Of a stretch of DNA of 64,000 nucleotides, positions 12,808-30,952 are shown piece after piece (position 1 is the stretch's first letter; each line of letters starts with the position of its first letter). This stretch comes from Orbicella franksi (Eukaryota), in contig OZ116698.1 of NCBI GenBank assembly GCA_964199315.1, positions 10,416,001-10,480,000 on the forward strand. Direction: 5' to 3'. The notes under the pieces are model-generated. The model was not told the DNA's origin and did not search any database. It worked only from the letters and a program-made list of their open reading frames with translations. The position numbers and the translations under genes are program-made.

Positions 12808-13654
12808 TTAAAATTTTTCTGAACTTTTACGGTTCCCTTGACATCTATCGCAAACATGCGCCCCAGAATATTTTTTAAGACAACTTTTTGCCAGACATGC
12901 GCGAAATCTAATTCTTGGGTAGGGCAAATCCATGGCAATGTCTATGTTAGTCAGTGGCAAGTACCATGGTAGCATATCCATGTATAAGCAACGCAAGGGT
13001 TTAAACTACAGCAGCAATTTTATTTGAAGGGAGCTAATTCACTAGAGTGGAAATCAATTTGCGGGCACCTTTCATATACATGGTCTTATCAGAGAAAAAT
13101 AATCATATAGGTAGTTCCACCTTACCCCTCCTGCTACGCCCCCCCCCCCCCCCCCCGAACCACTAGTAGAAACTACCAAGGGGAGTATGGAAAGATAGAG
13201 AGAAAACTGTGGGAAAGTCCAAATAAAGTCACGACTTCAAACGCTTACAAAATGAGGCTTTACAGTAAAAATACCTGATAACAAGTTCTTACCTTGCTTA
13301 GGAAAGGACTTTTACTCCGACTGTGCCTTCCCGACTGTAATTTTTCTGTTTAAACAGGAAACGCATAACATGTATGATTACCGACCAAAATTGAAAGAAG
13401 ATCACCAAACCTACACCATCAATTTAAAGATCACCAAACAAGAACACTACCTACCACCAACACTCGCAGTTTTTTGTTTTTCTTTATAAGTTTAGAAATG
13501 CGAGTCTTCTCCTGAAAAACAAAACAAAAAAATGGATGCACATCACGGAACACTTCAGGCTACTCCGCAGTGAAGTTACAAAAACAACAGGACATAACAT
13601 TCGCATATTACACAGGCGAACATGTACAATAGAAGACTACCAAGCAAGACTATC

Positions 13655-13687
<33 letters not shown>

Positions 13688-16600
13688 CTTAATTCACACT
13701 ATTCAGGTACAAAAGAAAGGTAAGACAAAAAGAGAAACTATAGAAAACGTAATGATAGAGATTATATAACTATATGTTCAATTTGAGTCGGTGTGCAACA
13801 GCCGAAGTAGCAAAGCTTTCGAGTTGGTTGCGGCTTATTTACAAATAAAGAAAGGAACGAACGAAGGAAACAAATAATCCATCAAACCGAAGCCTGGTGC
13901 CCAACCATTCGTATGAAAATGAGTTTAATTTGCATGTGAATCAAATCTCATTTATCCGTTTAAAAATGAAGTGCGGGAACACTGATGGCATTGACGGTTC
14001 GTATGAGGTGGTGAGTATGGAAAAACTCTTCTTATCATGGTCTGGGGATGATGCAAAACACTGTGATTATCGCGTACCTTTCTGTTGGTCGGGTTCTCAT
14101 AGCATAGAGAACATTCAAAAGCCTGTGGTGAAACAAAAGAAAAATCGTGTTAAAGAACAAATTCTCCTTATTTGCCTCCATGTACAAGACAAGCCACAGG
14201 TGTAGTTTTACACTTGAGCTTCACAGCTACCAATCTGACTAGCCTCTGATGCATCTATGTGAACTTTGTTCTGGCACCCTTCCATAATAAAATAAATAAC
14301 ATGGTCAAGAGACAGCAACCTTCCATAATGGAAGGGTGCACCGTTTCATAATAAAATAATTAAGATGATCAAGTGACAAGGGGCTATTCACCCTAAATTA
14401 GTTATACTAAGCCCGGCTTGGTTGATCTAACAGTTACAAACATTAAATGCTTGATCAAATGCGTGAGCAATTCGCAAGAAAAGCTGTTGTAATTTTCACT
14501 GACCTGGGCTGGAGGAGAGGCATAAAACTCGTCATCAAGAACTCTGAGATCCTTTTGGTGAACCTCCCATGATTCACCCAGATCCAGCAGTCTGATATAA
14601 ATCTAAAAAATCAGCAAAGTGTTTAGTTAGATAAGCTGTTTTGACACTAGAATTACCATACTGTGGTCTGGATCTAAATACTTTCAATGATATAAGTGTG
14701 TTAAAAGCCAGAAATAAAGTGAAGATCTTAATCCTTTACGGACAGTGCTTTTCTTGTCTTCCGGGTTGGTGCAGACGCGGTTCCCGAGGTTCCTTACCCC
14801 GTCTGTTACTTTACGGGAAGTAAAACTAAGCCAAGGAAACATGTTCCATTAAGACGCACAACATGAGATGACGACGTCATATCACGATGGAATGACGTCA
14901 TGATTCCCGAACAGCCGCCATCTTGGATCCGCCATATTGGATTTCTTTACTTTCCCAGGCCGTCAAAAGTAAACAAAATGAGTCAACCCTTACGCCGTCG
15001 AATCGAGACAAAAGCCTTCAGCTACGAGACATAATTTAACAACCTACTTACCTTCCCTTGATCGAGGGTTTTCTCCACCAGTGCTCTGTACCAGTAATCG
15101 TCCAGTCCCTTCACAGCGCACTGCTTGTAAAGGTGGATTTCGCCAGGATCAAGAGGTCTATTTTTGGCTTTAATGTGAGCCCTAATGAAGACATAATTAC
15201 TGAGCCCACACTGGAGAACAACTTCAAATGATGATAGTATCTTTCATATCTGCACTTTATTACTTAACTAATGATGAAATTCAAATGTTTTGTTCAAGGA
15301 GAAGTCTACGAATTTACAGTAAGTCGTAAATGGACATCTGTTAACACAACAAAAGACTACTTTAAAAGTATAAGCTTTGACAGATGTGAATAACTGGTTC
15401 AATCGTACTTCATTTTCAAGAGTCATTTCTTTAATTCCTTCAACAGTTCACTTGAATCTGGGATCTTCAAACCAGCAAGTAATTATTCTGTAAAACGAAT
15501 GATGTCAAAAGCTGTTTCCTTTCCTCAAACCAACAGCCTACAAAGCTCCTCAGCTGTGATAGCATAAGGCCGCTTTGATATGCGTTGGGGGTTACAAAAC
15601 TCATTGTGGTCTCCCCAGGACCAATAACTGGCCTTTTGATAGCCTGTGAACAATTACTGCCGGCTCTTAGAGTCAGGATTGGAGTAGTCTGGCCTTTCCT
15701 TTTTAGTGAACTTTCGTCCTCAGGCAATAACAGACTGGTACACGAATGTAGTGGTTTGGCAAATACAGTACATGTAATTGTAGAACAGCACTAACCCCAT
15801 CCGCTCCATGTCATCCACAAAGCAAGCTTCCTCCTTACTGGTTCTCACAACACGAGCCCAGAAAGTCCCGCTGCTGGACATGCTCTCTGTGGCCACAATC
15901 CAATGCTCCTTGCCTGTAAATTAAAAAAAAAAAAAAGAAAAATAGAATATTTAGAAAAGGAAGCCACAACAGACTTAGCTGGTTTTCATGCAGGCCCTTT
16001 ATCCTGGTCGAATTGAAATTTGGAGTGTTCGTTTATACGGAGGGAGGAAATTCGGAACCCGGGCAACATTGGTGAGAGGCAAGCGCTCTCACCACTGCAC
16101 CATCCCTGCTCCCCAAATGAGCATGACGTGATTAAAAGGTAAATGAAATAAATTTTGCCATGTTCCTTAAAAGACTGTTACACTCTGATATCCTTGCCAA
16201 TATTTACATTCCTGTGAAAAATGACAACAGTGAAGAAAATAATTATTAAAAACCCAACAGGCTTGATGCAAATATTAAATGATTCCATGTATGGCCTTGT
16301 TATAATCTGACATTGAGGGCATCTGCAAGCCCTGTGGGGAGTTTAAAGATTCACATTTCAGCGGACCAGGGCTGTCTGCTGCTTAATGGTTCCCTGTAAG
16401 ATCTTGTTATAATCCGACATTGAATGTGTGTAGGGCTTGTGGGGATTGTCAGGGACCAACGACAGAAATGAGGAATCGCCAAAACAAAACCACAGGGCTG
16501 ATATGCGGAGCCGAGGGCAGCCATAACAGCAGCTTGAAACAAGTGCACCAGCACCAAGAATGCCCCCACCCTGTTTAGTTTTTCTATGAACCATCCTGAA

Positions 16601-19600
16601 TGCTGCTGTTGTTGTAGTTGTAGTTAACTTAATAGAGCAGTGTTCAATTGCGTGTCAAAAAAAAACTCAGGAAATTACTTTGTTATACCTCCCAACACAA
16701 ATACATTTTCCGACTGGAGAACATGCCACGTGTCGGGGGTCAAAACTCACTAACTCCCTAGAGCAAACAAAACTCACTAACCCCCTAGGGAAACAACAAC
16801 TTGAACTTTCGACTCGCACGTGATCAGGTCATGCTCCTTGAAACCGCGGCAAATTTGTGAGCCAGCCGGCGTCAAACAAACGATTTCTTCGCGGTTTTTT
16901 TTTCTTTCTATTTTTGAGTTGGGCGGTATAACAAAACACTTAATGACTGGTCCCGCGAGAAACAGTGAGTTTTGTTTCCCCTCGACCTCAATGTTCCCCT
17001 CGGCTTCCCCTTGGAGAACATTGAGGGTCTCGGGGAAACAAAACTCACTGCTTCCCTTGGGGCCAGTCATTAAGTGCTTGTTGGTTTTGACTTTAGTTTT
17101 ACTACCTTTTGAGATTGGGTGAGTAGTCTAGTTGGTACATAATAGATCATAGTCATATTTTCGGTATTAGACTGGAACTAGCTTTTAACTGAGGCTAATG
17201 CAGGGAGTCTTTTCAAAGAGGTTTTATACCTTTCCAATGATATTCCCCCCCATGAACCTCCACTGCAAGCTAGTTCCAGCCCAACACCAAAAATATGAAC
17301 ATGGTCTATTGGTTTGGTTTTAGTTTAATAACACTCTAAATGATGCAATCCTGACCTATTTCTACCGGCAAATCTTCGCAGTCTGAGAGCAACTCCTCTG
17401 AGCTTCCACGGGAAAGGACTTCTTGTGAACACAAGTCGTTCAAAACAGGGTTATGTTTGTCTTGTACCTCACCATTTACATGACCTTCTGATACAGATGA
17501 ACCCCCTGAGGAGACAGTTTAAGGATCAAATAGAACCCATCGTACAAACCACCTGCAGGTCAATTGGTTAGTATTTAAACAATCTTATGACTGTCAGCTG
17601 CCATTTATATTTCACCTGAGTCACAATGTGGCCAGTCTTTCTAATCCAGATTATACAAACAATAATAAAAAAAAAAACAGCAGTGGATGAAAGCAGTTGG
17701 GAATGAGTAGACAGTGAATCATTTATTACAAAAAGAAGTACTATACTCTTCATTGGCTGTAATCTCAAGGCAAAGAGCAATAAAATCTGGCAGGGGGGTG
17801 GGGAGGTTCATTTAAGGCCAGGCACTGGGCAAATTGACCAGCTAAGAGGATGACTTTGCCGGCTGGTTTGACTATCCAGAGGAAGATGTTCTGCCAGCCT
17901 GTGAAAAACCAGTTGCCCTCCCGCTGAACACATTATTTAATGAAATCGCTGACAACATTTGTTGAAAGAATATGGAAACACATCAAGACAATTTCCCTAC
18001 CTGCCACAATGTTGTTGTCATCACATACTACATCAATGAGAGATGGATCAGCAGAGGACCAAGAATATGCCTCATCCTCAACTCCTGAAAAGCTGTATGA
18101 ACTAGGCACAGTATGAATTGACTCAAGAGCTGGGTCATGATAACCATCCTGTTTGAGTTCTGAAAAACAAACCAACACGCTTTACAGGGCTGTCAATAAG
18201 GGCCGTAACCCATAGCACCTGTTACAGCTGAGCATGCTTGATGGGCCCTTGATATTTCAGGTTAACTTGCCTGTAGTTGATACAATTCACCCATGCCGTA
18301 ACAAGTTTGTTACAGCTGTGAAGATCAAGGCTACAAATGAATCAAAACTTAGTGACAGCCCTGTTTTAAATGGCAAACATTTGTGGAAAAAACTTCCCAC
18401 TGAAGTGACAGACCAACCCAGTGTTAAGGGGTTTGGGACCAATTTTGCCACTTTTTTACCCCAATAGTGATCTAGTTACATTTATTCTCTAGTTTGTTTT
18501 CCTTTACTTCTGCAGTAATGGGTTAATCCCTTTGCAGATTACTGATGAAGATGTAGATGGATGTCTGCAGTTATTATTATGTGAAACAGCTAAAACTTGA
18601 ACAGTACTAACAGAAACTGTCATTGTCACACCTACCGAACTGCCACATGAAAGGCAAAGGATGGTGCACTCAAGTGAAGCAATAAATCAACTGACACTTG
18701 TTTGCTGTTGACAATTGCTGCTGTTGGTACTAGTGGAACAAACTGTCTCACAGGCAGTTCTGATACAGTAGAAAAGCTAAAACTTCCATACATTTTAAAT
18801 ACTGGAGACTCCCCAACACATACAGTAGCCTTAGCCTTTTATCCTAAGATTCTCATTAAAATTCTCCATAACAAGGGTAGACTGTCTCATTCAGTTACAC
18901 ATACAAATACTAGTTGACACATTTTGGAAACATGTCAAGACAAATTCCCTACCTGTGTCACTGGCCACAATATTGCTGTCATCACACTTTGTCTACCGCA
19001 AATGGGTCAAGTGCGGGAAATCCACCCTTGATCCATCCCTAGTAGACAAAGTGTGAGATAAATACTACACACACTGTCTACCTCGGATGAATCTAACCCT
19101 AATTCACAATTACAGTGCATGAGTAGACAGTGAATGCATTTATTTAAAAATACAATGTTTATACTATACTCTTGATTGGCTGTATTCTTAGGGCAAAGAG
19201 CAATGGTATTAGTTGAGGGAATATGGAAACACGTCAAGACAATTTCCCTACCTGTGTTACTGGCCCCAATGCTGCTGTCATCATCCACTTCATCAACCCC
19301 TAGGGATGGATTAACTTCAGACTCCCCCCAAGGATCAAGTTCATCTTCATTAGCCTCAACTCCTGAAGAGTTGCATGCACGAGGCACAGTATGAAGTGAC
19401 TCATCAGCTGAGTCAAGATAACCATCCTGATTTTGTTCTAAAAAACCAAACAATACTTTTTAAATGGCAAAAAAATGTCTAAGTCCACCATCAATTATTG
19501 TTATGTGAAAGAGCTGAAACTTAAACAGCACTGACAGAAGCTGTCATCAGGCTTTTCATTTGAAAAGTGGCCATCCAAAATGTACTATAGGGCCTACTAA

Positions 19601-22600
19601 AATGAGCAATTTATAAGACAACATATGAAAAATAAAACAATTTTCTTTAGAAAGTGGCCATCCACAGGATGCCTGGACACTCATCTGGCTAAAAGCCTGG
19701 CTGTCATTCATCAAACCCACTGAACAGTCACATAATAAACTATCCTCAGTACTAAAAGCTTTCTGACATATCAGGGCTGTGTTCTACAAATGCCCAGGTG
19801 CCATGGACAACTAATATTTGTCTTTGGGTGACTTGAAAAACCTACTTTTTTACATAAGCTTACACACGTATGTGCTGGCCACCCAGGATTTCATGGTTAG
19901 GAACCTTTGGGATCCTCATAATTTTTCATAGACCACAGCCTCACTAAATTTTGGACTATTCTTGTTCTTCTCCTACACAGAGACAATACTTTTGCACCGG
20001 GGCAAATCTGATTCTGAGCTTGTTTAAAGTATATTTACAAAGATCAGAACCGGGTTGGGCTGTGTGCTCAGATGTAAAAGAAAAAACAAACTAGAAGCAC
20101 CAGTTTCAAAGTCAATCTCACCAGTAGGTTCAATCTTGTGATCTTCGTTAACATCTTCCTGTCTTTCCTTGGGGGGTGAGCCTTCAGCTTCCATTTCTTG
20201 AGAGCTTGGTAGACTAGCCTCTACAAGGCTTTGACCTTCCATTGAGCCAACAGAAAAAAGGCCTACATCTTCATCTGGACCTTTTATCTGCTCATCATAG
20301 CCTCCTTGCAGCTCTGGAATAGCACATGTTCCTTCTTGGTCATGTGTGTCATCAGAATTAGTAATGACTTCTTCGCCATCACTTGCTGTCACACTGTCGC
20401 CATCACTGGACACAATTTCTTTGTTCTTAATAGAGAGAACTGGACCACAGCTAGTAGCAGCTGATGTGTCAGCTTGCAAGCTTGCTTCCTCTGGAGATGA
20501 ATCTGTAACAACTTCAGACACAACAGAGAAATCTGTTTCCACAGTTTCAGGTGGAATGTCTTTTGGTGCCTCTTGTGCACTGCTTTCATCCACCTGGTCA
20601 ACCTCAGAACACTTGGCAGCTTTCAAGTTGTCCTCAATCTACAAAAACCAAATGCAAATTGCAAACTTGACCGCGTGGCTACAAAATCAAAAGAAGTATC
20701 ACACAGGCTTAAGAAGTGGTAGCCTGCGAGAGCATCCAGTTTTTTTTTTGGCTTGTTTCATGGACCAAGGAAAAACCATCTGCGAAACCAAGCCACAGAT
20801 TGGTTTACGTGACAAAATGATAATGTCGAACTACATACACGTACGTGTAAGTTTAAAAGGTTTAAATAAAAAATGAAACATTCAACCTACACGTATAAAG
20901 ATGTTACAAATTGTACAGTGTCATTACCAATCCAGTTCCATCTGAGCTTGTTGTACCATACTGCATATACAAGGTATATGGTAACCTTCAATTATATATA
21001 ACCAGGGCAAGTTATAAGTACAAATATGTACTTGCCTCTTGGTCCCAGTCTTCCTGTGATGCTGGCAAACCATTGCTGGTTTCTTCAGGAGTATTCCACA
21101 AGGGTCCAGCATGAGTATTATTCAAGGGCTCAGCATCATAGCTTTTCCTGTCTCTGTTCTCTTGATCAGCAAGGTAGAACTGGTGATCCTTCATCGCTTG
21201 TTGTAAAATGGACTCAAAATTACCACTTGAGTCAAATGCACGAACAATCATCTGTCCAAGCCTGTTATTAATTTCATAACCATCGGCAGCTTCCTCAAGA
21301 TACCTCCTTGAGAAACCACAATTAGGTGTGATCACATCGGCAAAATAAACATTGCTTGCGTAGATCCACTTTATATCGCATCTTCCAGTCATCTTGCTAC
21401 CAAATTTAAATGGATCATTGAGCTTTGGGCAGCTCTTTGTAGAGTCAACAGCTGATACCATTTCAGCCATCCCACAAAACATAGAAGTTCTTATTCCTGA
21501 GAACAAGAGGAAAACAGGACTCTGGTCTCTGCGTGCTGCTTCACCAAAGACACGATTTAACTTTTGGTTGGCATAGGCTGTGGAACACCAAATGTTGAAC
21601 TTCATGCCCTCCACAATCCTCCTGATATCAGACCTGATCATCAAAAATCGTGCTCTGGGTAAGTCCTCCTGGCAAATCAAATTGAAGGAACATTTGGTCA
21701 GGATGTGGTTATAAGTTGTAAAGTCAACACATCCAGCCGGCAAATGAGTATCTGTCACTGCATTGTTAAAGCCGTCAAATGCATTTACAGGCATCACAGT
21801 GACTGCTTCATCCTGTACTGGCAGGTGTAGAATACCAGGAACACTATTTTGCTCCAGAGCAGAGTGAAGAGGAACCTTCTTCGACAGTCCTTCACGTTCA
21901 GGAGAAACCGGAACAAACTCTGCTGCTTCAGCACGAAGTACAGGCTTATCACCACCCACATTATCATGCTCCTCAACAGGGACATCTATTTTATGAACAT
22001 CAGCAGCAACTTGATCAGTAACACCAGTCTCAGTGTTTGTCTTTGCCAATGTCTCCTCTTCTTCAGATGTACTGCTATTAGCATCCATCTTTGGGACAGT
22101 GTCTTGTACAATGTTGCCTGGTGTCACTGTTTCTGAAGTATGTTGTTTGACAGTGTTGTCTCCACCAACAACTTCCACAGTTTGTACCTTTTCTGCTTTT
22201 GGCTGAAGAGGACGATCCTGAAGAAAAAAATCATTAACACGTATTGTTTAGATCACGATTAACTGTTTAACCTTTAATTAACAAACATTCTTTCCCATCG
22301 GGAAAAAGCAATGATTTGCATCCAAATAAACAGGAAGGACAAACTCTCACCCCTAATCCATGTTTTTGGTCTTCCACTGAAATGTTGACAAAAAGAGTTG
22401 AGTTACATGACTTGTATGGTCATAAAAATTATTATAATAAGTTAATCATAATATTCACCATGACCAGAACAAGAGACAGAGTGGAGGATGGGCAATGGTC
22501 TCATCTGTAAACAAGCCTCTAAGACAGTGTATAAATTTAAACATAAGTGATAGTGGTCAATTGTGTGCCCAGTAACCTACAGCTGTAGTATCCCAACCAA

Positions 22601-25600
22601 GTTGATGTAAAATATATAAATTATAAGCTGAGAACTGGCATTATGTGTCTAATTTGAGCTGGTACATGTAGTTTCAACAGGCCCTTTGAACAACCTGCTC
22701 ACTTGGTACAGGCTCAGCCATGCTAGGATGCAAGTGGCACAGTGGGATTTCCAAAACAACTTAGAAAGTCAAGCATTGCTTTGTTTTGGATATCCCACTG
22801 CATGACATGTGGCTCAGCATGGCAGATTTGTACAATGTGATGTGGTCATGCAAGGGACCTATGTGTCATAATTATACTCCTCTCCAGCTGCAATGTAAAA
22901 TACAAAAAAAGTTGAAAAGCAAAATAGCAAAACCCAAAGTTTAAGAAGAGCTGCTGTGACCCACCTAATTTTGCAACTTTGCTGTTGATACAAACTGGAA
23001 TCTCGCCACATGAACCCAGCATCACATGATAAAGCTCACGGCCTTTCTTATCAGTGACCTATTGAGTGGCAGAAAATAAAAACTAAAACCCAGCAAAAGA
23101 ATATGTACATTGATATTAATTATCAGACGACATTGATAAGATACCCAATGGTAACAGATCCAATAAAATTGAAACTCACATCCATTATATGACTGCCTTA
23201 ATTTGATAATCTAAGCACAGGTACAAATTGCACCGTCAGGTACATTGGATACACATACTGTTACCAACGCTAAGTTTGAGATTTCTGTTCATCTTAAAGG
23301 GTATTTTGGGGGGATATTAGATCTTGCCTTCACTGTACATCTCAGTCATGTATCTCACATGTATCTGTTAGACCCGACCCAATCTCCGGTAGAGCACTGT
23401 TGTTATTACCTGGCCTTCCACTGAAGCCATCAGAATCTTGTTGAAAGTAAAGTCTTTAAAGCACCACTTGGCCTGAAAAGCATAAGAATCAAATTATTAA
23501 CTATGTAGGAAAACATGAAGGCCTTTCATGTAGAGCCACACACACTCGTAAGAGAATATAATTGGATGGAAAACTACCAAAAAATTACATCTTAAGTGTG
23601 GTGGAAAGCAAATTATATTAGTAGTCTCTGTCATACACATAAATATTTTCTCTTCTATCAAAGTTGTATTCAAATTATTGCAACCACTTCTGTAACTTTG
23701 AATTCAATCACTTTTTATGTTTCAAACTTTCCTTGCATTAACAAAAATATGATTTATTAATACACCCTTGTACATTGTATCAGTCTGTCCCCATCCAACC
23801 AGAGTTCAAACAACAGCATACATGTTCTTTCAAGTGAACGATGACAAGAAAGATTTGCATTACCTCATAAGGAAGTTGTGTTTCTGGATCAGGAAGTAAA
23901 CAACACTCCAATGCCTACAAGAACAAAAAACACTCTTGGTGATCATTTTCACCTTAATTTTGGCATGATACAATGTACTGCTGCATGTAAGATGCTATAA
24001 ATTACTACACAGTCATACTAATGACTATACATTTGTTACTATTAAACATCTTGTTCTCTGTTTATACAACCCTCAGACTATTGAATTTCACAACAAAATA
24101 TACATTAAAATAAGTAATGTAAAAAAGGAACAATAAAATAAAAACTCACAAAATGCAGGAAGTGCCTAACAAAAATTACCACTTTGTAGAGTCTGCTTAG
24201 AAAGTATGTGTTGCAAAAAATGTCAGTTTATTTAATAGAATGGTGCCCAACAAACACCATTGATAATGATACAACCCTTGACTATACAACTATACCTGAA
24301 ATGAAATATCAACCACATCTAATGGTAGTTGACAAAGGCTTGAAGGTGAGAACTCGTCAACAATTCCCAAGTCAAGGAAACGGAGCCTTGCCTAGAAACA
24401 CAGTATTGTAAAAAAAAAGGATAATGTAACATTCAGAGAAATAGTTTACCATGAAACATCACAATTTTAAAGCATCTACAAGTAAATCAGTAATATCAAT
24501 TTAGCATTGTAATAGTCAGTGTATGCATGTAACAAGCACCACCTGGGTACCAGAGGTTTTTACTTTCTCATATTGCAGGATACCTTGGATCAGCCAAAGG
24601 TTGACATGGTTGCCAACAGAGTGCATCTTGGGATACAAGCGATTGGAGTTTTTGGCATATAATGGCGTGCACAGTGCCAGTGCTGATATATAAACGCTTA
24701 ACTACATAAGGTGACTTGGTGTCACATCTATGACTTCTTAACTTTGCCCCCATTTTATCCCATATTGAATACTGTATCCTGGCTGATAGCGGGTATCTTA
24801 TGGGATCCGTTTGAGTCCAAAGTTTCCCAGTGAACATAATACTAACTTAGAAAATTGGGATTATTTGAGCAGAGCAACAGGGGACTTTGCCTGCTTGCCT
24901 GGCTTTTGTTACCCTTGGTGCCAGAGGTTTTTTGTTTTTCGTGGTGAAGCTGCAAACAGTGAGCTGTGATACTGCAATTTTTGCAGTGGAATTTAAAAAG
25001 CCTTGGTGTGTCTTTGGCGTGGAAGTCTTGTGGAATGCACCCTAGGTTACCAGTGACACAGCTGCAAGGAAAAACCTCTATGCTGGAGTGCATAAACTTC
25101 CAGTTGATGTCTGTGATTGAAAATATGTCTGTGCTTGAGCACTCTATTAAAGACTTGACTGAAATCAGAAACTATGCATGAAAGGCATCTGGCACCCAGA
25201 ATGGACAAGGACAGTCAAGCGCTGCACAATCAAAACTTTATATGTATGTGCTTCACAGTGCCTTACTAACTGTACGACCATCCTAGCACTGAAAATCAAC
25301 TGGAGTAATCAGTATGCAGCATTCCCAATGTGTAAAGCATGTGCATCCCTACAAACCCCTTCATACAAATATAAGTTAGTACACAAAGATGGATTATTGT
25401 GGTAGGTGTAATTTGCTAATTAAAAAAAGATTTCTGCAAGTTTACCAGATATAACAACCAAGGGGTTTAGTAAAGAAATACACCACCAATAATTTGTGTG
25501 TAAAAAATGTGTGTGTAGAAAATCTTTACTTACCATGCCAGAGGTCGTAACAAGCTCAATCCTGGTTCGGCAGAATTCTTTGACTTGTCTATGGCGGACT

Positions 25601-28600
25601 GCACAAAGTGTTCCCTCTTTTAGAACAACAGGGTCACCAAACCCATGCTGAAGGTAGTATTTTCTACAAAACAATTCAGTACGAAAATAAAAAACAACTA
25701 GTACTGTAAATTGTACATGACAGAAACAATTATTAATAATAAATAATTGCTAATGTTTCAAACCTCCAAGGGGAAGGAAAATTGGTTTGAAAAATTGGGT
25801 AGTTTGAGAAAAAAATCAGGGTTAAAATTACATTGTTCGACTATAAGAGGAGGGAAACAACTCTTGGTTCAAGTTATCAGGAGGTTTGAAAAATCCAGGG
25901 TCCAAGCAATTGGGATTCTACTGTATACAGAATAAGATACAAACAAGGCGCCTAATAAGAACCGCACTTGATAGCAACTTGAATTTGCCTCTGTTTTTCC
26001 ATTTCTGGTTCTCCTATCTTTGCAATCCAGAAGGATCCATTTCTGGCCAGTGATCCAACCACACAGACAGGAAATACATCTTTACCTAAAATGCAACAAA
26101 ATTGTCTATCATTGCCAGGCTAGTGATCCATGTGAGCAATTCATGAAATGACAGCAGTATATAAAATGTACAGCCAAAGGAGAACTGCACCTTTCAGCTC
26201 ATCGGGGAGATTAACACGGGGTTCTTCTGGGGGACCTTTTTGGTCTTCAGCTATAGGCTCTTGTGAAGGTTTTACACAAGGCTGATCAGACGAATCCACA
26301 ACAGGACCACTCAGTGGTTCCTGGTTGGTACTTGTAGTTTCAATGGGAACAGCAAAAGGATCTTTTTTAGCTTCGCTTTCACCATCTCCAGCAGGAGAAC
26401 TACATTGTGTAAGCATGGATGATACCTACATGAACGCAAAGATAAACTTAGGATGCATTGCATGACATTTGCTGCATTCTACAGTATAAATTATACTTAT
26501 TTTATGATCATTTCATAGTCTTCGTAAAAGGATCTTGTCACACCTACATGTACATGACTGTAATGTACACTTAAAGTTTACTACCTCGACCATGTTATCA
26601 TGATTTCCCAAAACAAAATGTATAATCTAACCACAAGGTGTTTAGAATTAATTTTCCTGGTAACCAAAATAGTCCAGGCTGTTAGAAAATGTTATCAACC
26701 ACTCAGTACCTTAACCGTGTGAGTGAAAAATCTGTAGACACTGATTTGATTCTGACAGGTCAAATTGTGTACTGACCAATCACAATAAAGTTCAGGACAT
26801 GTATGTGAGCAAACCTCAAAACCACAAACCAAATTACTGATGTTACATGTATTTGCAGTTTAGTTTCCTTGTGCATAATATTGGCTTTTCCCTTGCCACA
26901 CAACACAATGACATTCCATAAATATTTCTGGGGTTCACGGTTTACAGAGTTTCACAGTAACTTCAGACAATAACATTTATGTTGTACCTCGACTTTGACT
27001 ATCCTAAATATTTCAAAAACCTCATCCAACAATAATTGTCACTTTCAACTGTCACATTACCTGGCAAGGATACAGGATTTTAGAGAAGGGGGTCCGAGAT
27101 ACAGACTGCCAAAGGTGATCCCCTGTAGGGAGGTCCATGGGGTATCATCCCTCAGACAATTTCCAAAATTGAGGTCCTCAGAAATGGGATTTCCAGCATT
27201 GATAATAAAATTATCTCATTTTTTTTTAACTTAGGGTTTTTGACGAAATCCCCCGAACCCCCTACATGTAGATACACCCCAGCATTACCAAGCAATTTAA
27301 TGGCAAAAAAAAACAATTGTAGTGTTGAGCTGATTTCTAATTCTATGTAGCAAACTTAACTAGACAAACAGCCATGTACATTGAACCTGTTAACAGTACC
27401 TTTGCCAAGTAGTTGAAAGCTTTCTCGATTTTTGTTTCACAGTCTTTAATTTCAGCAATTCTCTTTTTTGCTGCATTTTGAAGATGGATCAACTGACTAA
27501 GAGTCTCCTGAGAGTACAAAAGAATACCAAACAATGCATTTACTAGTTCGGCCATGATAGATATTCACATACAGCAACAATTTTGAAAACCTTATTCACC
27601 AGAAATGTTAAAACTTTTGAGGAAAAAAACAGTTAATTTAACTGTACTAAATAAATGATGTACAAAGATGTGCACAATTTAATTCACAGGACAGATTTAA
27701 AACAGTACAATGTATCCAGATCAAGCAGCCTGGGTTCCAGCCCTAGCTGGGGACATCGTCTTGTGTTCTTGGGCAAGACACTTTACTCTCACAGTACCTC
27801 TCTCCACCCAGGTGTATAAATGGGTACCAGCAAACTTAATGCTGGGGAAGACCCTGCGATGGACTAGCATCCCATCCAGGGCGGAGTGGAAATACTCCTA
27901 GTCGCTTCATGCTACAGAAACCAGGATAAGCTCCAGCCTGTTGGGCCACTTGGCTTGTATGCAGACTTTAAAAATAATGTAAATTTCTCAAAGAGCTCAG
28001 AAAATTTCAACTCTGTTTTGCCAAATCTAATCATTGGATTTGGTTGGTGGACTTCTATAGAAAATGAAACTCATTTAGAAAGGCAGTACATGTATTCACA
28101 ATTAAGAAATGTTATTAAAGTAAATGGGTGAAATTATTAATTAATTAATTAAAAAAAGAGCTGATTGTGGGCCGCCTTTGACTTGTAGTTTACATCACCC
28201 AAAATCCATACCTTTTCTTCTGTTTCTGTATATTTTAACTTTGTCAGGACATTTTTAAGCAGATCATTTTCTACTTCTATTAACCTAAGAAAGAAAAAGT
28301 TTTAAATTTTCTGATCAGAACAGCTACTGTAGTTCAAGTACATGCAAACTCTGTCACTGAGAGAGTCTAGTAATGAATAAAGTTACGATGACGTCGACAT
28401 TCCATCTTCTACAGTACATTCTAGAAGCTTTTAACTTACTTTTCAATGTCGCTGACATCTTGAGACAGCCTGCGTTCTTTTGCCTATTAAACAATCAAGT
28501 TAGAACAAGAAATAGTTAATACCTGTAGTAGACCTTTACAAACATCGTATAGTGCCTGTACAACTACATGTACTTGTACCACTCATGAAGCAAAGAACTT

Positions 28601-30952
28601 AACAAGGTTGAAAGGAGGTAAATTGTACATGTAGAAATAGAAAAAAGCATACCATAAATCCTCCACATGTATTTAGAAATGCTAGTAAAGTGCCAGATTA
28701 CCCCTGACTTTTTGCACCATACATGTACTCAATAAATGAGGAGTTATATATTTTGCAGTTAATTACCATTCTTATTGAACATTCATGTATGAACTGTTAA
28801 TAATTTTTCCAAAGATCACAAGTACTGTGCATGGATGTGCTTATTTTTTGGTTATAAAGGAGAAGAAAGTTAAGTGCTTTATAAAGAGGAGAATTGAAAA
28901 TTTCTGGTTGTAAAAGGGTTTCTTTGACATGGCACTTCACAGAGGATTCACAGTTACTGTAGTTAATTAAGGCATTTTGATTTTCTATGGCATTACAAAA
29001 CACTACATGTACACCCTTCCTACATTGCACCATAGCCCAATTCCGAGAGCCCTAAGCTTCTCTGTCAAAGTGAGGCCTGGTGCACAACCATTCATACGAA
29101 AATGAGTTTAATCTGCATGTGAATGAAATCTCATTTTCATAAGAAAGGACGGGCAACAAGACTCACTTTGACAAGGAGGCTAAAGGTAATTAGCATTTAT
29201 ATATTAATTACATTTTAATGAAAAACTAAATTAAACATTTTACCTTCAGTTCCAATGGCTCAACTTTGTGAGCCCTGAAGACATCAAGGCTGTGTACTTG
29301 GATGTTACATTGCGCGCACAGATTTATAATACTCTCTGCAAAATTCAATCATCACTGCAGTAAGGACACTCAAACTGTAAACACATGACATTTTTTTGTA
29401 CATTTTTTTGGTTATATAATATACAAGAAAAGCATTTTATAAAACAAAAAGGAATCTTGTTAATTTGAAGAGCCCTCATTCTGCAGTCACTAAATAACTG
29501 CACAAAAAATCTCAAGAGTTCACAGTTTAAATGTCTTCACTGTAACACTATTAATAATATACATGTATATCTATAACAACAGCATTTAGCCAAAAGAGTA
29601 AATTCCTGAGCAATACATGATTGGTTTGCTCCCAAACACGAGATTCCACAAAAAAGGAATTATGGCAAATGCTAAATTTGAGACTTTGCCAGATGGCCAG
29701 TCTAATTAAGAGATAGAAAACATTTACCATGTTTATATCAAGTTTTAGTATACATCTACTAACGTTCTATCACGAATGCTGTTCTCTGATTGGCTACGCT
29801 ACTCACTATCTTTTCTGTGATGGATAGTGAGTAGCGTAGCAGTGTGCCCTTGTTAACAAAATGACGGCCGCTTCTTGGCGTTTACGAAGTATCTGTGAAG
29901 AGGATTTAGATTAAGTTTTGAACGACTGGTAGATTTATACTAAAACAATAATATTAGATTATTCGCTCTCGATTTCTATCAACCGATAGTTGACCCGGGA
30001 GAATGAGAGATGTTATGGGAACACAAGCTAACCGGCGAGTGTTTCCATAGCTTTTTTAAATTCTCCCAAACTTCCACAAGTGTTTCTATAACTCAACAAA
30101 ACCACGGAGAATATGTTTTCTATTTCTTTTAGAAAATTCTGTGACGAAAAAAAGAAATCAACTTGGTTAATCGATCATCAAAATGTAATTTCTCTTTTAT
30201 CATGCCATCATTACGTGAACAGCTCGTGCTGGCTCTTGTTTCAGTCGAGTTATAGAGATATGATTTTAAACCAATCAGCGTACATATTTTCTAATATATT
30301 TTACTGAAGAGATTTTTTAAGATATCTTCTGTCACATTTCAACTGTGACAAAACCAATCACATGGTACAACTACACATCGTGGATCTTTCTCACCGTTTC
30401 TGGGAAACGAATGGTGTTTCATTAGGGTTTACCATCTTGTGCACGGGTTGGTGACTTGTTTCAGAGAAAAGCATTAAAAATAGTCCCAGTATCTTGCAAA
30501 CAAAATGTAAAATCTTTTTTCACGGTACCTCTGCCGCAATCCCAAGCTCGTGAAAAATAAACATGACACTTTGTCGCTTTTTTCTCAATTCTTGGAAACA
30601 CACGGTATCCAAGAAAACTACAATGGCAGTTTCTTGGTAAAACTTACCAAACAAATCACAATTTTCATTCTAAATTTCAACAGATTTGCAGCGCACAGCA
30701 ATTATTTTTTCTCTCGTCACGTGCAACCAGTACAATATTTTGCCTGGGCATACTTCGGTACACTTTAACATGGCAAATGAAATATTTATTGAAAGCAAAT
30801 GGTTGGAATAAAAAGACTTGCGGGAATAAAATTACTATGTACAGACAAATGAAAAAAAATAATAACTTACCATATTTACAATCAAAACATTTGAAATCTG
30901 CACGCTTTTCCGGATGATTGTAGCAAATAGGCGACATGGCCACGGCGGCCAT
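12808..30952 (-). CDS. B-box / coiled-coil / Tudor / YTH / Tudor protein (RNF17/Qin-like Tudor scaffold carrying a YTH domain), about 1376 aa
   Basis: Phase-consistent exons (high-low): 30952-30871, 29335-29244, 28483-28440, 28284-28212, 27507-27400, 26425-26191, 26085-25968, 25663-25534, 24391-24296, 23914-23864, 23472-23410, 23058-22965, 22376-22351, 22217-21036, 20638-20101, 19437-19252, 18159-18001, 17505-17356, 15913-15796, 15181-15052, 14602-14504, 14122-14078, 13511-13451, 13345-13293, 13005-12808. Total 4131 nt, one open frame. B-box CYNHPEKRADFKCFDC...LCAQCNIQVH...AH. Tudor1 GTLCAVR..EFCRTRI..RFLDLG..FQALECCL. YTH IWCST..PVFLLFS..FCGMAEM..DIKWI. Tudor2 FWAR..CAVKGLDDYWYRALV..RLLDLGE..PAQAFECSL. 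The 26-nt exon and the last three exons are less certain. Confidence 0.85.
13654..13686. repeat. (CAA)n microsatellite
   Basis: About 11 tandem CAA units read directly. Confidence 0.95.
13891..13953 (+). repeat. Fragment of an interspersed repeat also present at about 29074-29137
   Basis: GCCTGGTGC(C/A)CAACCATTC(G/A)TA(T/C)GAAAATGAGTTTAAT(T/C)TGCATGTGAAT occurs at both sites. Confidence 0.8.
16937..17076. repeat. 140-bp imperfect palindrome at one end of an interspersed repeat (about 16770-17076)
   Basis: Arms CACTTAATGACTGG..CAGTGAGTTTTGTTTCCCC..CCTCAATGTT / AACATTGAGG..GGGGAAACAAAACTCACTG..CCAGTCATTAAGTG. Apex CGGCTTCCCC. Confidence 0.85.
17141..17310. mobile_element. MITE with about 45-bp imperfect TIRs; decayed relative at about 6370-6500
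   Basis: AATAGATCATAGTCATATTTTCGGTATTAGACTGGAACTAGCT ... AGCTAGTTCCAGCCCAACACCAAAAATATGAACATGGTCTATT. Confidence 0.75.
21230..21662 (-). other. YTH domain (YTHDF-like, divergent) within the Tudor gene
   Basis: ARFLMIRSDIRRIVEGMKFNIWCSTAYANQKLNRVF..PVFLLFSGIRTSMFCGMAEMVSAVD..GRCDIKWIYASNV aligns by eye with the YTHDF pattern ([54 protein letters not shown]). Confidence 0.9.
24568..24837 (-). mobile_element. Possible decayed Tc1/mariner transposase fragment (HTH region) in an intron
   Basis: VVKRLYISTGTVHAIICQKL resembles the mariner helix-turn-helix (IS.GTVH.II..KL). No DDD motif or TIR was seen. Confidence 0.3.
27058..27200 (-). repeat. Interspersed repeat fragment; inverted relative at about 61820-61960
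   Basis: GGATACAGGATTT..AGAAGGGG..CGAGATAC.GAC....CAAAGG.GATCCCCTGTA..AATTGAGGTC..CAGAAATGG matches the reverse complement of 61826-61958. Confidence 0.65.
27714..27970 (+). mobile_element. tRNA-derived SINE, 5'-truncated copy
   Basis: Colinear with the 60421-60726 and 56907-57201 copies (GGCAAGACACTT.ACTCTCACAGT.CCTCTCTCCACCCAG.TGTATAAATGGGTACC ... ATGCAGACTTTA). Confidence 0.85.
29755..30310. repeat. Composite of interspersed-repeat fragments
   Basis: Short hairpin GCTACGCTACTCACTATC..GATAGTGAGTAGCGTAGC. AAACAATAATATTAGATTATTCGCTCTCGATTTCTAT is shared with the 41325 palindrome family. Confidence 0.55.

Follow-up and report, generated by a model that had tools for sequence, protein, structure and literature searches.

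A coral YTH domain with a re-lined m6A pocket inside an extended-Tudor protein

Can a YTH domain exchange most of the pocket by which it is known and still do work for the cell? The YTH fold is the textbook reader of N6-methyladenosine (m6A), and its pocket is nearly always the same. The question is raised by a gene in a 64,000-nucleotide window of the genome of the coral Orbicella franksi (GenBank assembly GCA_964199315.1, contig OZ116698.1, positions 10,416,001 to 10,480,000; all coordinates below are those of the window). One exon of this gene, on the minus strand, encodes a YTH domain within an extended-Tudor (eTudor) protein. Two of the three cage tryptophans and most of the rim residues are replaced, and the replacements are common to a conserved clade. 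On balance, we give roughly even chances to the reading that this is a working module for single-stranded RNA, with the canonical groove and a hydrophobic pocket, whose base specificity would be altered or relaxed rather than that of a canonical m6A-selective reader.

The frame that holds the domain runs from stop to stop over 21015-22247 of the minus strand; the ATG/GTG-started open reading frame (ORF) covers 21012-22178 and encodes 388 aa, and residue numbers are given for this ORF. The domain itself was delimited in two ways.

21231-21653, minus strand: YTH domain (Pfam envelope), ORF residues 176-316, identified by PF04146, by PDB sequence matches to YTHDF2/1/3, by AlphaFold2 (AF2) and by Foldseek.
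21171-21743, minus strand: extended conserved YTH module, LPAGCVDF...HQFYL, ORF residues 146-336, N-terminal helices included, delimited by the invariant columns of 16 orthologues.

A YTH domain had been proposed from the letters alone at 21230-21662, and the Pfam match lies at essentially the same coordinates. PF04146 scores 65.1 bits against the window ORF (E 7e-18, cut-off 22.1) with the model covered in full (positions 1-135), and 62.8 bits against the full gene model, P0168, which is described below. The alignment with human YTHDF2 by phmmer reaches 52.9 bits. Structure prediction agrees: with an alignment of 124 sequences, AF2 predicts the YTH alpha/beta fold with confidence (predicted local distance difference test, pLDDT, 86.8; predicted template modelling score, pTM, 0.85), and two modelled N-terminal helices, H2-8 and H13-18, precede strand 1. 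Foldseek searches with this model place YTHDF1/2/3 on top (probability 1.0, template modelling scores 0.65-0.83). An AF2 run from the 16 close orthologues alone had a pLDDT of 43.8, was unusable and was replaced by the deeper alignment.

Judged by sequence, the domain is of the DF/Pho92 type on a very long branch. The assignment follows from the scores of the subfamily profile against PDB sequences, which are 68 bits for DF2, 64 for DF1, 57 for DF3 and 50 for MRB1/Pho92, against 27 for YTHDC2, 26 for YTHDC1 and 26-27 for Mmi1. In the FastTree phylogeny the stem of the subfamily measures 0.92 substitutions per site, and its distance to the DF protein of the same genome is 3.66, against a median of 0.93. 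The tree also places a DC1-like protein, P0022, near the subfamily, possibly through long-branch attraction. The cage of YTHDC1 consists of W377/W428/L439, and its recognition loop is longer. A YTHDC1-type origin, prompted by the length of the loop, by the aliphatic residue at the third cage position and by a DG-EI motif, was considered and rejected, the match being 26 bits to DC1 against 68 to DF2.

In the structure of YTHDF2, W432 and W491 sandwich the adenine while W486 touches the methyl group; N6 is bound by the carbonyl of C433, N3 by the amide of Y418 and N7 by a water molecule that W432 and D528 keep in place (PMC9466600). The equivalent elements of the coral domain are as follows.

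21588-21590, minus strand: retained cage tryptophan W197 (YTHDF2 W432), followed by C198 (C433); invariant in all subfamily members.
21381-21431, minus strand: re-lined recognition loop C250-R266 (CPKLNDPFKFGSKMTGR), with L253 at W486, M263 at W491, and F257 and F259 in an insertion of 4-5 residues.
21618-21635, minus strand: pocket rim R182-R187 (RSDIRR), in which K416 is replaced by R, Y418 by D and E420-D421-D422 by I-R-R, with one residue deleted.
21282-21284, minus strand: D299, the equivalent of YTHDF2 D528, kept and invariant; the preceding equivalent of R527 is Ala.

The substitutions first read from the bare sequence are recovered in the YTHDF2 alignment. The first cage Trp is kept (TGG of NIWCST at 21588-21590), GVWSQDKWKG is replaced by CPKLNDPFKFGSKMTG, SEDD by DIR-R, SVNGSG by SGIRTS and RDTQEV by ADGYEI. 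The canonical three-residue cage (W432/W486/W491) is not kept as such: W432 is retained, Leu (Asn in the phmmer alignment) stands at W486 and Met at W491.

How unusual these changes are was judged by aligning 147 YTH representatives from outside the subfamily, together with the subfamily, to one hidden Markov model (hmmalign). W432 is Trp in 146 of the 147 and in the subfamily; C433 is C, A, S or T elsewhere and Cys here. Other positions differ. At K416, Lys is found in 143 representatives, and R or K in the subfamily; at Y418, Y or F (141) gives way to D, E, N or S; D422 (Asp in 131) is deleted, or is Arg by the phmmer alignment; N462 (Asn in 142) is variable; and R527 (Arg in 139) has become A, G or S. 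At the two lid positions, W486 is Trp in 133 representatives and an invariant Leu in the subfamily (Asn in the phmmer alignment of the window ORF), and W491, which is Trp in 131 and Phe in 12, is an invariant Met. Outside the subfamily, only one of the 147, P0023, lacks an aromatic residue at both lid positions. Within the loop, C250, P251, L253, N254, F257, F259, G260, M263, G265 and R266 are invariant. The pocket thus keeps its floor (the W432, C433 and D528 equivalents) and has a new lid and rim. The aligned sequences mark this re-lining as a family-defining change that is neither a chance event nor a sequencing effect.

The surface remains basic. The net charge of the domain is +5 to +8 and its pI 9.0-9.7 (medians of the YTH family, +5 and 9.12). 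Locally, the rim and the loop each carry +3, against +1 for the rim and -1 for the loop of canonical DF proteins.

P0023 deserves a separate remark. This 273-aa YTH protein (L019:2948-3778, on a contig of 4.3 kb) has the first cage Trp only, the others being Y and V, and the FastTree phylogeny makes it the sister of the coral subfamily (support 0.90). The PAM2 motif, which is introduced below, is absent from the 273-aa protein.

By word-indexed and exhaustive searching, 16 close orthologues were recovered as ORFs, with 64-100% identity in the YTH part. Among 1.84 billion representatives, five clusters at 50% identity fall below E 1e-30; the next matches, ordinary YTH proteins, reach 104 bits, a sharp fall from 154. 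At least 20 sequence clusters from several coral genera contain this exon with this loop, and there are named members in Orbicella, Desmophyllum and Oculina; the architecture is also seen in Oculina and in a 1298-aa product encoded on a transcript-like contig of 4.1 kb. All members have in common the exon start (L)Q-D/N-RPLQPK, the segments LRAEAAEF(V/I)P, PGILHLP and GCVDF..YN, the YTH domain, and the exon end SQEDWD.E. Four divergent loci, with YTH identities down to about 36-45%, carry B-box, coiled-coil and eTudor-1 exons upstream and eTudor-2 downstream in the same order. Because these loci keep collinear Tudor exons around the YTH exon, the fusion is as old as the subfamily. A canonical YTHDF whose W/W/W pocket is intact is also present in the genome, as are DC1-type exons, so the eTudor-YTH copy is an addition to the canonical YTH genes and not a replacement of them.

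A comparison of nonsynonymous and synonymous substitution rates (dN/dS) across coral orthologues had also been proposed. Using the Nei-Gojobori method on six orthologues with unsaturated dS, we obtained these medians over 15 pairs.

N-terminal linker of the exon: dN/dS 0.69.
Second linker: 0.46.
PAM2-like block: 0.25.
YTH domain: 0.20, and 0.21 for the extended module.
Re-lined loop: 0.09 at dS 0.44.

Selection is purifying over the domain, and strongest in the loop when set against the linker. The most constrained part of the exon is the most changed part of the pocket.

Such constraint could also serve m6A. The original prediction allowed that the inserted FKF might rebuild a cage, which the sequence would accommodate, F257 and F259 being invariant. 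The domain would then still select m6A, with a cage made of W197, F257 or F259, and M263, as in YTHDC1, and with R187 donating a hydrogen bond to adenine N1. Several observations favour this and weigh against an altered specificity. The placement of M263 at W491 is firm, because the G-R motif follows it. With 4-5 extra residues in the loop, the residue that corresponds to W486 depends on how the alignment is anchored: it is L253/N254 if the alignment is anchored at the N-terminal side, and lies between F257 and F259 if anchored at the C-terminal side. The most divergent member, P0020, has a Trp (position 258) that precedes the Met by exactly five residues, the same distance as between W486 and W491 in DF proteins. 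Since the loop alignment is ambiguous and YTHDC1 uses Leu at W491, a W/F/M cage that selects m6A is possible. The W432, C433 and D528 equivalents are invariant, the constrained loop keeps F257, F259 and M263 throughout, and the basic surface would suit such a reader. The backbone contacts to N6 and N3 are independent of side chains (PMC9466600). A dN/dS of 0.2 indicates constraint and is silent on its purpose.

The same alternative has to explain why N-anchored alignments put Leu or Asn at W486, why the lack of an aromatic residue at both lid positions is unmatched among the 147 representatives save P0023, and why Y418, the EDD rim, N462 and R527 have changed too. The loop in the AF2 model, moreover, has a pLDDT of only about 72, which is moderate confidence. 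We regard continued m6A selectivity through a rebuilt cage as a serious alternative, less probable than an altered or relaxed specificity.

The YTH exon is part of a larger gene, which the original prediction had missed. P0168, which shares a 90% cluster with the window ORF and is annotated as 'uncharacterized protein', aligns by tblastn to exons from 29336 down to 13301. Its product comprises, in order, a B-box-like zinc finger, a coiled coil, eTudor 1, the PAM2-like motif and YTH domain, an acidic linker, and eTudor 2.

13298-30952, minus strand: whole gene, corresponding to XP_020612319.1 / LOC110050735 of Orbicella faveolata, 1300 aa (P0168).
30677-30952, minus strand: start ORF with a Cys/His pattern, from the open-frame listing.
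25534-25749, minus strand: core exon of eTudor 1, in the chain of GT-AG joints seen in polyA RNA sequencing (RNA-seq) and identical to P0168.
24296-24391, 23864-23914, 23410-23472, 22965-23058 and 22351-22376, minus strand: five small exons linking eTudor 1 to the YTH exon.
21036-22217, minus strand: YTH exon, internal, 1182 nt, 394 codons, phase 0, encoding linker, PAM2-like motif, YTH domain and tail.
20639-21035, minus strand: GC-AG intron after the YTH exon, donor GCAAGT, with 18 spliced reads in two runs.
20122-20638, minus strand: acidic Ser/Asp/Glu-rich linker exon, downstream of the YTH exon and joined to it between 20638 and 21036.

Pfam finds TUDOR twice in P0168 (88 bits) and YTH at residues 594-733 of 1300; TUDOR twice and YTH are likewise found in P0181, a 1313-aa protein of Desmophyllum pertusum. 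A zf-B_box match at P0168 residues 8-55 falls short of the cut-off (20.8 bits, against 24.1). Run on individual Tudor or B-box exons, Pfam gave one TUDOR match of 15.6 bits only, and the architecture is taken from P0168 and P0181.

PolyA RNA-seq reads of a coral about 99% identical were mapped to 20001-26000. The depth over the YTH exon is 5-15 in two runs. The reads join 24390 with 25533, 23913 with 24295, 23471 with 23863, 23056 with 23408, 22376 with 22965, 22216 with 22350, and 20638 with 21036. Once an ambiguity of 1-2 bases is resolved, all joints are GT-AG on the minus strand save the last, which is GC-AG. Once joined, the exons stay open for 748 codons, in a frame that leads from a Tudor-like exon across the YTH exon to the acidic exon, and the spliced peptide is contained in P0168. 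The linker exon splices onto an exon that starts near 19440, its loose end at 20122 matching the ORF at 19010-19459. Fourteen RNA runs from many studies contain the stretch, and two of the four polyA runs have almost no reads.

These data bear directly on the simplest alternative, namely that the domain is a decaying remnant or an artefact of annotation or assembly. The loss of several hallmark residues and the long branch would fit decay. The frame is open, however, and the exon is spliced and expressed; dN/dS is low over the domain and lower still over the loop when set beside the linker; the same exon and loop recur across the coral clusters; and the fold is predicted with confidence. A pseudogene was therefore rejected on RNA-seq splicing and dN/dS: expression together with purifying selection rules out the decay that had been named as a possible outcome. 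A remnant or artefact of any kind is very improbable.

Several features of the transcript are recorded here. Expression depends strongly on the sample: one gave 2-10 reads, and two others, sequenced to a comparable depth, gave 129-184. A 26-nt micro-exon (22351-22376, minus strand) lies directly upstream of the YTH exon. The Tudor part is encoded in exons of 26-96 nt and the PAM2-like motif, YTH domain and tail in one large exon, an arrangement that would fit the capture of an intron-poor YTH copy. The acidic-linker exons 19010-19459 and 17936-18181 (minus strand) hold similar modules, EQNQDGYLDSADESLHTVP...GVE.. and ELKQDGYHDPALESIHTVP...GVE.., which have the look of an internal duplication. 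At 25761-25895, RNA reads run into unrelated sequence on both sides and show several fixed differences; this is probably a repeat transcribed from other loci.

The two Tudor domains that flank the YTH domain were located on P0168.

eTudor 1, minus strand: P0168 residues ~212-326, exons 25534-25749 and 24296-24391.
eTudor 2, minus strand: P0168 residues 1146-1257, exons 15025-15243 and 14405-14602.

eTudor 1 matches Drosophila GH18329p (PDB 5YGB), and eTudor 2 matches the eTudors of TDRKH, TDRD1 and SND1 (33-20 bits). Both have DLG where TDRKH and the fly 5YGB protein have DFG/DYG, and eTudor 1 has EFCR in place of KWYR, positions which we take to belong to the methyl-arginine cage. Both cages may thus be incomplete and methyl-arginine binding is doubtful; the protein may be a scaffold whose three 'methyl-reader' folds have all been re-lined.

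A further explanation of the YTH pocket is that it is idle. The domain would then bind an unmodified RNA motif through another surface, or act as a protein-protein module in the Tudor scaffold. Since both eTudor cages seem incomplete, the whole protein may have abandoned the reading of methyl marks, and the long branch with its many rim changes points to a functional shift. There is precedent in Schizosaccharomyces pombe Mmi1, whose YTH fold binds RNA without m6A, as the original prediction had noted; its cage is intact, an acidic rim partly explains its failure on m6A RNA, and the DSR motif is bound on another face (PMC4737157). The precedent is imperfect: Mmi1 kept its cage in acidic surroundings, whereas the coral rim and loop are more basic than those of canonical DF proteins. 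Furthermore, the strongest constraint falls exactly on the loop and floor of the pocket, which is unexpected if the pocket is unused. An idle pocket is, in our estimation, doubtful. The original prediction had offered a pseudo-reader or a reader with new specificity. Its remodelled pocket is real and conserved across the subfamily, and the retained pocket floor and basic surface make the pseudo-reader the less likely half of that statement.

A second sequence feature of the YTH exon may concern a partner of the protein rather than its pocket.

21897-21947, minus strand: PAM2-like motif KPVLRAEAAEFVPVSPE, ORF residues 78-94, within the YTH exon and some 85 residues upstream of the domain.

PAM2 motifs have the consensus L-x-x-x-A-x-E-F-x-P and are ligands of the MLLE domain of poly(A)-binding protein (PABP). 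We take KPVLRAEAAEFVPVSPE to fit this consensus. The residues P79, L81, A83, A85, A86, F88, V89 and P90 are invariant (LRAEAAEFVP in the 16 orthologues), and the motif is found in all subfamily members, the most divergent reading LRADAAEFIP. When the PAM2-like peptide was modelled with a PABP-type MLLE domain of the same genome, the predicted complex scored 0.42 against 0.02 for the best control, a mark that is weak support, being reached by 51 of 78 solved complexes and by 2 of 108 mismatched pairs. The runs agree in at least 86% of contacts, with a partner pLDDT of at least 55. Because PAM2-MLLE complexes have already been solved, the prediction speaks of likeness rather than of binding. The motif may recruit PABP.

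The search for MLLE partners brought up two further loci. At G000:C6:17978400-17982839 there are at least six MLLE (PABP C-terminal) matches in one locus, four of them in a single 389-aa frame; a multi-MLLE protein encoded there would be unusual. Over 2.5 Mb at G000:C8:21011185-23470979, at least seven MLLE fragments lie in frames of 60/61 aa (four with the same score) and one in a frame of 227 aa, which suggests an amplified or repeat-borne copy.

With these results in hand, the reading given at the outset, a working RNA-binding module of altered or relaxed specificity, can be set out step by step. Since the floor is kept, the hydrophobic lid is constrained and the groove is basic, the domain probably still takes a nucleotide into the pocket; since the lining is different, the specificity is probably altered or relaxed. 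The floor (W197/C198/D299) and the re-lined hydrophobic lid would accept a nucleotide from single-stranded RNA. The full-length protein would tether that RNA to a Tudor-type granule scaffold, and the upstream PAM2-like motif may bring in PABP. A more specific version, which we offer tentatively and hold to be unlikely as it stands, is that the re-lined pocket reads another modified nucleoside, or an unmodified base in context, inside a germ-granule-type Tudor scaffold that docks PABP. If this were true, the m6A-reader fold would have given rise to a new specificity that links mRNA tails with a piRNA-type (Piwi-interacting RNA) assembly in corals. In any case, a conserved clade that has replaced its lid and rim is a natural experiment on how much re-lining a YTH pocket tolerates and on what else the fold might recognise.

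The fusion itself is already known. In 2020 Bell, Wolf and Koonin (BMC Biol 18:159, PMC7641849) described a coral eTudor-YTH protein, from 'some species of coral', with an N-terminal B-box zinc finger, multiple extended Tudors and a YTH domain. Its YTH was treated as an m6A reader, and the fusion was used in a scenario for the origin of the Tudor proteins of the piRNA pathway (PMC7641849). The words 'aromatic' and 'cage' are absent from the text of that paper, and its supplements mention neither YTH nor a coral species; thus the fusion had been described before, but not the state of its pocket. A literature search by gene identifiers gave no match. What the present analysis adds is the re-lined pocket, the pattern of selection, the encoding in a single exon, the PAM2-like motif and the support from RNA-seq. 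Should the domain not read m6A, the argument that takes eTudor-YTH as an m6A-reading link in piRNA origins (PMC7641849) needs revision.

Comparison with known systems places the protein as follows. The gene in the window fits the published coral eTudor-YTH architecture (PMC7641849), with at least two eTudors and a YTH domain in one polypeptide and with RNA joints in one frame. Its likeness to piRNA Tudor scaffolds of the TDRKH/Papi and RNF17/Qin type lies in the eTudor matches given above and in the layout of B-box and Tudors, which resembles Qin/Kumo (PMC7641849). None of these scaffolds is known to carry a YTH domain. YTHDF1-3 and Pho92 are the best match in both sequence and fold, and have in common with the coral domain the W432, C433 and D528 equivalents and the basic surface. 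They differ in the lid (W486 to Leu, W491 to Met in the coral), in its longer loop, in the rim (Y418 to Asp, EDD to IRR) and in the loss of N462 and R527. They differ also in their setting, since YTHDF/Pho92 proteins have a C-terminal YTH domain after a long low-complexity N-terminal region, whereas the coral YTH lies between two eTudors. YTHDC1 has, at its third cage position, an aliphatic residue, L439, as the coral protein has Met, and its loop too is longer; it keeps the methyl-contacting W428, however, where the aligned coral residue is Leu, and the match is weak (26 bits). Mmi1 offers the precedent for a repurposed YTH domain, yet the two depart from the canonical reader in different ways: Mmi1 kept its cage and has an acidic rim, while the coral domain has changed its cage and carries a basic rim and loop (+3 each).

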